Of a DNA stretch of 64,000 nt, positions 8,807 to 11,307 are shown one piece after another. Every line of letters starts with the position of its first letter. Position 1 is the stretch's first letter. The notes under the pieces were generated by a model. The model saw only the letters and a list, made by a program, of their open reading frames with translations, searched no databases and was not told where the DNA came from. The stretch lies in the NCBI GenBank assembly GCA_001600695.1, contig BCKQ01000009.1, positions 484,772 through 548,771 on the forward strand. The letters run 5' to 3'. The translations under genes and the position numbers were made by a program. Origin of the DNA: Ascoidea asiatica JCM 7603 (lineage: Eukaryota > Fungi > Ascomycota).

Positions 8807-9130
8807 ATGCCTCCAAAAGTTCAAGCAACAAAAGCTGCCAAAGCCGCTGCCGCCATGGCAGGTGGTAAAAAATCCAAAAAGAAGTGGTCCAAAAAATCGG
8901 TCAAAGATAGAGCTCAACATGTTGTTATCTTAGATCAAGAAAAATATGATAGAATTATGAAAGAAGTTCCAACTTATAGATATATTTCTGTATCTGTTTT
9001 AGTTGATAGACTTAAGATTGGTGGTTCAATTGCAAGATTAGCTATTAAACAAATGGAAGCTGAAGGTATTATTAAACCTGTTTCAAGACATTCAACTCAA
9101 TTAATCTATTGTCGTGCCGCTGTTGTTTAA
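8807..9130 (+). CDS. RPS25: 40S ribosomal protein S25 (eS25)
   Basis: MPPK...[17 protein letters not shown]...[23 protein letters not shown], with highly biased codons. Confidence 0.98.
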
Positions 9131-9277
9131 TTTATTTTAATTATATATATATATATGTATATCTAATAAAATTTATTATAATTTAATTTAAATCTCTTCA
9201 ATTACAATCATCTCATTCTTTACCTTCATTACATTGAAATTTCCTTAAAATTAAATTATTTCTATCTACCACCACGG

Positions 9278-9427
9278 TTACCCGTTTTAAACATAGCAAT
9301 TCCAGTATTATTCAAAATTAAAAAAACAAACAATCACGTGTTTGAACCCTACTTTATTATTTTTGTTCAGTTAACTCATTAAATTCAATTCATTATGATA
9401 AAATTTTCATTTTACATCTCTATAAAT
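9278..9427 (+). promoter_or_regulatory. Promoter of the snoRNA host transcript (Reb1, Cbf1, Tbf1-like sites, TATA)
   Basis: TTACCCG 9278-9284, TCACGTG 9334-9340, AACCCTA 9345-9351, TATAAAT 9421-9427. Confidence 0.55.
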
Positions 9428-9654
9428 TTCAATCTCAATTTCTTTTATATCTAAATTTATTTTAATAGTTCAATAATTTTTTAATAATTAATATCAAATA
9501 TTAAGTTATTTATTTATATATTTAAAAGATAATTACTATTATTATCAATTTTCTTTATGGTAAAAGGAATGATTTTGATATGATTTTTCTTTTTACATTA
9601 TATTGATTAATGGGTATGTCTCAATTTCAATCACAATTTCAAATTATTATAATT

Positions 9655-9728
9655 AACTGATTATATTATATTCACTGAGGAAGTATATGCAGGACCAATT
9701 TGAATTAAGGAATTCTTCGTTTATGATA
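9655..9728 (+). ncRNA. SNR57: C/D box snoRNA snR57 (18S rRNA 2'-O-methylation guide)
   Basis: TGATTA box C-like, CTGAGGAAGTATATGCAGGAC core as recalled for yeast snR57, and guide AGGAATTCTTCGTT complementary to 18S AACGAGGAATTCCT (one G-U) before box D ATGA. Confidence 0.85.
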
Positions 9729-9859
9729 ATTATAATAATCAACTTTCAATATAAAATAAATTTATTTTTCAATATAAAATTAAAAACTAACTTAATAATT
9801 TAATAGTATGTCTATTTTCAAAATATTTATAAATTTTAAAGGTTCCTTTTTATTATTTT

Positions 9860-9945
9860 AAACTGATGATATCCTTACATATTTCTGCTGATTTTTTTTT
9901 AAAAAGAAATGATTCTAAGAAAAACATGCATCACCAACTGATTCA
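9860..9945 (+). ncRNA. SNR55: C/D box snoRNA snR55 (U33 family, 18S Um guide)
   Basis: Box C TGATGA 9864-9869, D' CTGA 9888-9891, guide CATGCATCACCA complementary to 18S TGGTGGTGCATG (one G-U), box D CTGA 9938-9941; middle position in the 57-55-61 cluster. Confidence 0.85.
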
Positions 9946-10102
9946 TTGAAATATAAAACAATTACAATTTATTCCCTTTCAACTTTTTAATGGTTTCAAT
10001 TTTATGAAGAACATGTTTACTGACTAATTTTTCATTATAGATAAGTATGTTTTACAATTTCAATAAAAAAAAATAATAAATAATATGTTAATTGATTGAT
10101 AT

Positions 10103-10193
10103 TTTATGATGATAAACTTATTCAGTTCTGCTTCTGAACCACTTTTTTCATGAAGATAACAATTTTACCACATCATTCAAAACTTTCTGACTA
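10103..10193 (+). ncRNA. SNR61: C/D box snoRNA snR61 (25S rRNA Am guide)
   Basis: Box C ATGATGA 10106-10112, guide TTCAGTTCTGCTT followed by D' CTGA (complementary to 25S AAGCAGAACTG), C' ATGAAGA, AATTTTACCA element, box D CTGA 10187-10190. Confidence 0.88.
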
Positions 10194-11307
10194 AATATCA
10201 ATCAATTATTATTATTAATATTAAATGAATCAATCATATCTTAACCATTTCAAGGAACATTAATCTAACAATTTTATATTATATAGTCTATTTGTAATTA
10301 ATAAAACAATTTCTTTTTCACTTTAATTCATTATCATATTTCTTGTAGTAAATTAATCTAACAGTTTTCAGTGTAAAATTAATTTTATTACCATTGAAAA
10401 AGTGCGTGTCGAGTTGCGTTTTTTGTATTTTGATGCGTCGACGGTTTTTTATCAAATGTTCTTTGCATATACTCAGTGTTATCAACATTTGGTTACCGTA
10501 CCTAGAGTTCAGTTTAAAGACTTACCCGGCTTAAGATAATTCCATACTTCTGGCTTCTATTGTGAGTACAACTTTATTTTGATTTTAACTTCGTCTAATT
10601 TTATTTAGATCTGAAAATTTATAATAACCTATTTATAAGAAATTATATGAAAATATTTGTGATAAATAAGAGAATCATTAGTTTTATAAGTTACTCGAAC
10701 CTCCAATTGATTTTAACAAAGAATTTTTTCATCTAGTCTATGGTAAATATATTTTTATTCCCTTAACAACTAGAATTTATAAATACTGTCAACAAAATTT
10801 GTTTCAAATTACACCATGAGTAAGCTTTTATTCTCAATATTCTAAACTTCTTAATATCTAGAAGATTAATTAACAAACTGGACAAAAGAATTCTATAGAA
10901 TCTGCCCATGAATTGATTCCTCAATTTTTATTTCATTTCAATCTAAGTGATGATCCATAATTTTTTTTTGGAAATCAAAAGATAAGTTTTCAGGAAACTA
11001 TAAATTTAAAATTATTTTTTTTTAACTCAATCATTCAGCCTATCCCCGTTTAATGATCTATTTAAAAAAAAAAATAATATATATAAATTCATTCAATTCT
11101 TCTCATTACTATAATCCTATTGTTTATTGTATTCTTAAATTCATAACTATATTAAATTTAACTATCTCATTTATTTTCATTTATTGATATTCATTTCATT
11201 TTTTTTTTGATCTATCAAGCTAAAATTATCATAAAATATTTATAATTTATCAATTAAAAAATATATATATTCAATCACAAATATAAGAAAGAGATAAATA
11301 AAACAAA

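Follow-up and report, generated by a model that had tools for sequence, protein, structure and literature searches.

A shared-guanine junction between the predicted snR57 and snR55 introns of a snoRNA host gene in Ascoidea asiatica

In the window, by which we mean the whole 64,000-nucleotide stretch of Ascoidea asiatica DNA that was analysed, the last base of one predicted snoRNA intron is also the first base of a donor sequence for the next. We consider it likely, with a probability of roughly 0.8, that the locus is orthologous to the fungal cluster II snoRNA host and that its main splicing route is stepwise, the inner intron being removed before the outer one. From the sequence anatomy, the conservation between species and the experimental precedent in other yeasts we infer splicing at this locus, its order and the ends of the snoRNAs. 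The same arrangement at the same gene has already been published for Candida and Debaryomyces yeasts, and the Ascoidea case is an orthologue of it in a lineage where it has apparently not been described.

In the route that we favour, the exon between introns 1 and 2 would have shrunk to a size of −1, with the TAG of the first and the GTATGT of the second overlapping at G9806. Positions 9614–9806 would be excised first and their debranched lariat would give rise to snR57. G9613 would now be joined to the TATGT at 9807, forming a new GTATGT donor, and G9613 together with 9807–10040 would be excised to yield snR55. Excision of 10045–10286 would provide snR61, and the four nucleotides ATAA would be retained in a functionless spliced RNA.

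The host gene and its predicted introns

The snoRNA cluster is found ~500 nt downstream of RPS25 (coding sequence 8807–9130; Pfam PF03297; 90% identical to eS25 of A. rubescens), its upstream syntenic neighbour, and all of the window features described here are on the + strand. Rfam matches locate the box C/D snoRNAs snR57 to 9651–9731 (RF00474, 66.8 bits), snR55 to 9859–9943 (RF00472, 40.4 bits) and snR61 to 10101–10193 (RF00476, 63.3 bits). The snR55 match is below the gathering score of 50 but has an E of 8.5e-5 in a local scan, and the 3' guide and D box of this snoRNA are 95% identical to those of its orthologues. The identities of snR57 and snR55 put forward in the original prediction are supported by these matches. 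Consensus donor, branch site and acceptor sequences surround each of the three snoRNAs, which, by the matches and the splice signals taken together, follow one another in the order snR57, snR55, snR61 with one in each intron. They start 37–56 nt past the donors and end 59–80 nt ahead of the branch points; for snR57 the distances are 37 nt from the donor and 59 nt to the branch A. No open reading frame of at least 60 aa occurs in 9131–11307. As read from its letters, the snR57-snR55-snR61 locus is a non-coding host whose predicted introns each contain a single snoRNA.

The candidate promoter region of the host gene, as judged from its motifs, is at 9335–9427 and contains CACGTG (9335–9340), AACCCTA (9345–9351) and TATAAA (9422–9427). 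The first two resemble Cbf1/Tbf1-type sites of snoRNA and ribosomal-protein genes in non-Saccharomyces yeasts. A CACGTG is also seen at the A. rubescens locus (L001, 4516–4521). Just 3' of the host gene, positions 10400–10560 form an island richer in G+C than its very AT-rich surroundings, for which Rfam returned no match up to an E of 10 and BLAST found nothing similar in the fetched loci.

Exon 1, part of the putative non-coding host RNA, spans 9450–9613 (the start is approximate) and terminates in TTAATGG, the final base being the G9613 that would be donated to the second donor. The inner intron, intron 1, is 193 nt long (9614–9806) and has the donor GTATGT at 9614–9619, the branch site ACTAAC at 9786–9791 and the acceptor TAG at 9804–9806; a scripted check confirmed that the first AG 3' of the branch site ends at 9806. 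G9806 is both the last base of this TAG and the first base of a second, genomic GTATGT (9806–9811), giving an exon size of −1, and the junction aligns with the corresponding block of four further loci described below (L002, L006, L010 and L013). The original prediction had placed the donor at 9614 and the end of TAATAG at 9806, with the G common to GTATGT, and in the scripted reading of the window letters this is exact to the base. Its further claim, that removal of 9614–9806 rebuilds GTATGT from G9613 and TATGT, agrees with the letters as well.

The body of intron 2 extends over 9807–10040, so that the outer intron, G9613 plus this body, measures 235 nt. Its branch-site candidates lie within TACTGACTAAT (10018–10028) and its acceptor TAG is at 10038–10040. 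The 4-nt micro-exon ATAA (10041–10044) separates it from intron 3 (242 nt, 10045–10286), which has the donor GTATGT at 10045–10050, the branch site TCTAAC at 10264–10269 and the acceptor TAG at 10284–10286. The sequence TTAATCTAACA occurs twice, at 10260–10270 and 10353–10363; an AG downstream of the first copy ends at 10286 and one downstream of the second at 10371. The snR61 intron has in this way two candidate pairs of branch site and acceptor, the alternative pair occupying 10357–10371.

A search of sequencing runs for this stretch returned three, from two studies and all of DNA, which are possibly the same data that gave the assembly. Their contigs show no differing letters over the segment 9400–10500, and with this identity, assembly error is ruled out as the source of the junction. 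The single apparent joint in the contig comparison, from 9768 to 10205 with 528 other letters between, does not represent splicing, as it stems from unrelated contigs that match over 21 nt of low-complexity sequence.

Could the overlap of AG and GTATGT be a coincidence in AT-rich DNA? The loose motif CTAAY..AGTATGT is common and is not enriched, with 162 matches genome-wide compared with 212 in the reversed control, and the case is therefore carried by context and conservation and not by the motif alone. The composite pattern of a G plus donor, a branch site and AGTATGT within 500 nt is, however, found once in the window where Markov-1 simulations give an expectation of 0.015 per strand per 64 kb. 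The overlap also falls exactly between two snoRNAs, and its position is conserved in other species as well as in another cluster of this genome. We regard coincidence as extremely improbable, and the sequence comparisons that follow have effectively refuted it already.

Conservation of the shared-G junction

Orthologous loci were taken from the neighbouring DNA of other yeasts using RPS25 homologues as anchors. Besides the window, four of them have all three snoRNAs together with intron signals. In Cyberlindnera fabianii (L006), exon 1 ends in ACAG followed by GTATGT, and the junction reads TGCAG with its G common to GTATGT. The equivalent sequences are TAAG, GTATGT and ATTAG in Wickerhamomyces ciferrii (L010) and ATAG, GTAAGT and TTCAG in a yeast assembly from Logan (L002), the last G being shared with GTATGT in both. 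The fourth locus, that of A. rubescens (L001, 4658–4921), has an exon 1 ending in A, followed by GTACGT, and a 4-nt exon TTTG with no overlap. The conservation that the original prediction looked for among orthologues, a shared G accompanied by an exon-1 G, is therefore present in three of these species and absent from A. rubescens. Outside the snoRNAs, the sequence that aligns between species is limited to the branch site and the AGTATGT block, and a BLAST comparison of the host-gene region with all of the fetched loci found nothing conserved except for the three snoRNAs.

This pattern bears on the possibility that a single long intron (9614–10040 or 9614–10286) is removed in one step, the internal AG/GTATGT being ignored and the snoRNAs being freed from the lariat by other nucleases. 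Minor exon skipping is known in Candida snoRNA clusters (PMC5033589), and Luo et al. (PMC3596301) left room for such an explanation in pointing out that a single functional donor used with alternative acceptors would yield the same RT-PCR products as theirs. Against it, nothing in the spacer apart from the internal branch site and AGTATGT is conserved in four species, exonucleolytic release as a rule goes with a single snoRNA in each intron, and the snR57-snR55 spacer has no stable stem that might serve as an endonuclease site (z +0.60). We consider removal as one long intron to be improbable.

The window genome has a further shared-G junction in another cluster, snR41-snR70-snR51 (cluster III), at 1156–1412 of locus L013, corresponding to G000:C3:690155–690411. 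This locus (G000:C3:689000–692500) was found through two matches of the loose genome-wide motif scan. Its exon 1 ends in AAATG and is followed by GTATGT at 1156; snR41 is at 1217–1302, and the ACTAAC beyond it precedes a TAATAG with its G at 1407, which is also the first base of a further GTATGT (AGTATGT, 1406–1412). The second junction of this cluster (1683–1719), ahead of snR51 at 1820–1901, is ambiguous as it has several candidate AGs. If the first AG past AACTAAC, with its last base at 1707, is the one used, a 6-nt exon ATTAGA precedes the GTATGT at 1714; an AG ending at 1712 or 1714 would give instead a 1-nt exon or a further shared-G overlap.

The base preceding the upstream donor is a G in 5 of the 5 shared-G junctions and in 4 of the 13 other host-gene donors (Fisher p = 0.015, which is indicative only, since the cases are phylogenetically related and not independent). 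The exon-1 G thus goes together with the overlap, and these sequence comparisons suggest that the shared-G junction is of old origin and under constraint. The window organism is not close to the Candida/Debaryomyces clade: its best RPS25 match is that of A. rubescens (90% identity), and a prolyl-aminopeptidase-like hydrolase of its genome is no more than 49% identical to a protein of any named yeast, with many distant yeasts among the matches.

A broader reading, which we put forward tentatively and hold to be rather doubtful, is that the −1-nt exon is ancient and has been maintained by selection through several orders of budding yeasts (the CTG clade, Cyberlindnera/Wickerhamomyces and this deep AT-rich lineage) instead of being peculiar to the Candida clade, and that it recurs in a second host gene. 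The exon-1 G would then be held in place to rebuild the donor, and the overlap would enforce a coupled release of the snoRNAs in the 5'-to-3' direction. Were this true, the exon-1 G would be free to change where a micro-exon reappears, as in A. rubescens.

Some of the loci examined lack part or all of the cluster. No cluster II was found beside RPS25 in Yamadazyma tenuis (L005) or in L007, L008 and L009. Babjeviella inositovora (L004), Pachysolen tannophilus (L012) and Ogataea parapolymorpha (L016) have snR55 and snR61 near RPS25 but not snR57, and are thus uninformative as to the snR57/snR55 junction. The snR61 of O. parapolymorpha has no intron signals.

Order of splicing and release of the snoRNAs

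The experimental precedent comes from the same cluster in other yeasts. Donovan et al. 2016 (PMC5033589) describe a shared g that can serve as the last base of intron 1 or as the first base of intron 2, the donor being regenerated after removal of intron 1 "by donating a G residue from the upstream exon", a pathway which was predominant in RNA-seq. Ordered splicing in C. albicans is credited there to Mitrovich et al. 2010, whose work we cite through that paper. In D. hansenii, RT-PCR by Luo et al. 2013 (PMC3596301) revealed a "shared nucleotide by two introns" and only those products that are expected from stepwise splicing in the 5'-to-3' direction. Altogether, nested splicing of cluster II has been seen by RNA-seq or RT-PCR in C. 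parapsilosis, C. orthopsilosis, L. elongisporus, C. albicans and D. hansenii (PMC5033589, PMC3596301).

The original prediction held that the order should be fixed, with the snR57 intron removed first, because use of G9806 as a donor would destroy the acceptor of intron 1. By precedent, removal of intron 1 first is the likely main route, but the order is not strictly forced, since ATAA (10041–10044) and the following G10045 supply an AAG at 10043–10045 that could replace the lost acceptor. In a reverse order, 9806–10040 would be removed first by way of the genomic GTATGT and intron 1 would then use this AAG; in a hypothetical sequel, G9613 would rebuild a donor with the TATGT at 10046 for the snR61 intron. 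Excision of 9806–10040 would join TTAATA to ATAA and G, placing the first AG past ACTAAC ~20 nt from the branch A, and an analogous minor "pathway 2" was observed by RNA-seq in C. parapsilosis (PMC5033589), although the published pathway requires a single-G exon, which the hypothetical route here does not have. On the other hand, pathway 1 predominates in C. parapsilosis (PMC5033589), products with intron 2 or intron 3 removed first were never detected in D. hansenii (PMC3596301), and TAG is the stronger acceptor compared with AAG. Both routes require the G at the end of exon 1, which therefore does not discriminate between them. As the main route, we judge the reverse order to be unlikely, and inner-then-outer removal is the one that we retain. 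The suggestion that such ordering meters the release of the snoRNAs is unsupported.

The snoRNAs might, instead, be released from an unspliced polycistronic precursor by RNase III (Rnt1) and exonucleases, the splice-like motifs being relics. This is the mode of processing in Saccharomyces, and Saccharomycodes ludwigii offers a locus that looks to be of the RNase III type: its snR57, snR55 and snR61 (L011, 5878–6521) have no flanking intron signals, and the spacer between snR57 and snR55 folds strongly into a long stem (−26.6 kcal/mol, z −3.65). In the window, each of the three predicted introns has correctly spaced consensus signals (donor, branch site and acceptor), and the two spacers between the snoRNAs are no more structured than shuffled controls (z +0.60 and −0.13). 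We therefore find an unspliced precursor very improbable here. The folding of the spacers fits a release that depends on splicing in the window and on an endonuclease in S. ludwigii, and stepwise splicing continues to be the reading that we prefer.

Comparison with known systems

The value of the Ascoidea case lies mainly in annotation. The host gene is invisible to ORF-based tracks, and the snR55 intron would escape any intron predictor that does not allow splice sites to overlap. There is also a modest comparative addition, in that the junction is found in Cyberlindnera, Wickerhamomyces, the L002 assembly and cluster III of the window genome, with the exon-1 G tracking the overlap. Between 2010 and 2016, RNA-seq and RT-PCR had already demonstrated the mechanism in other yeasts, so the locus opens no new question.

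In S. cerevisiae, the orthologous snR57, snR55 and snR61 are arranged in the same order as in the window but in an intron-less polycistronic transcript, from which they are released by the Rnt1 endonuclease; the neighbourhood of that cluster is presumably syntenic too, through RPS25B. The window locus differs in having intact splice signals and spacers without stems. It is not a precursor of the Saccharomyces type, given the consensus splice signals and the z values set out above against that of S. ludwigii.

The recursive splice sites of metazoans, or ratchet points, are formed by a complete AG and a complete GU in juxtaposition, with an exon of size 0. These sites and the route proposed for the window have in common that removal proceeds in steps, the first of which re-creates a 5' splice site at the junction. 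Here, however, AG and GT overlap by one base, the exon size is −1 and the regenerated donor would need a G from the upstream exon. As AG and GT share G9806, the junction is not a recursive site of the metazoan type with a zero-nucleotide exon.

The (D1,2) spliceosomal twin intron, or stwintron, was defined in filamentous ascomycetes by Flipphi, Fekete and colleagues (PMC8469720), and the sequence features of that definition are all present at the window locus. Its putative complex intron begins with 5'-GGU (G9613, G9614 and T9615), and the putative inner intron has its own donor (GTATGT at 9614), branch site (ACTAAC at 9786) and acceptor (the first AG, ending at 9806). TAG and TATGT meet at 9804–9811 such that G9613 and TATGT would restore GTATGT, and the putative outer intron has its own branch site, within TACTGACTAAT, and a TAG ending at 10040. 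The comparison with a (D1,2) stwintron made in the original prediction is, in this respect, borne out. Since the first exonic base downstream is an A, the alternative (A2,3) excision would be unavailable in the window. The stwintron definition comes from protein-coding pre-mRNAs, in which full removal is imposed by the reading frame, whereas the window host is non-coding and has a snoRNA in each constituent intron.

The closest counterpart is cluster II of Candida and Debaryomyces. There, nested splicing has been seen in RNA; in the window it is predicted from DNA. In place of the single-G exon of the C. parapsilosis group, the window has the 4-nt ATAA (10041–10044) between introns 2 and 3. 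The two agree in other features: both have the order snR57-snR55-snR61, with one snoRNA per intron of a non-coding host, and in both introns 1 and 2 have a G in common and the G of the upstream exon rebuilds, or in the window would rebuild, the donor.
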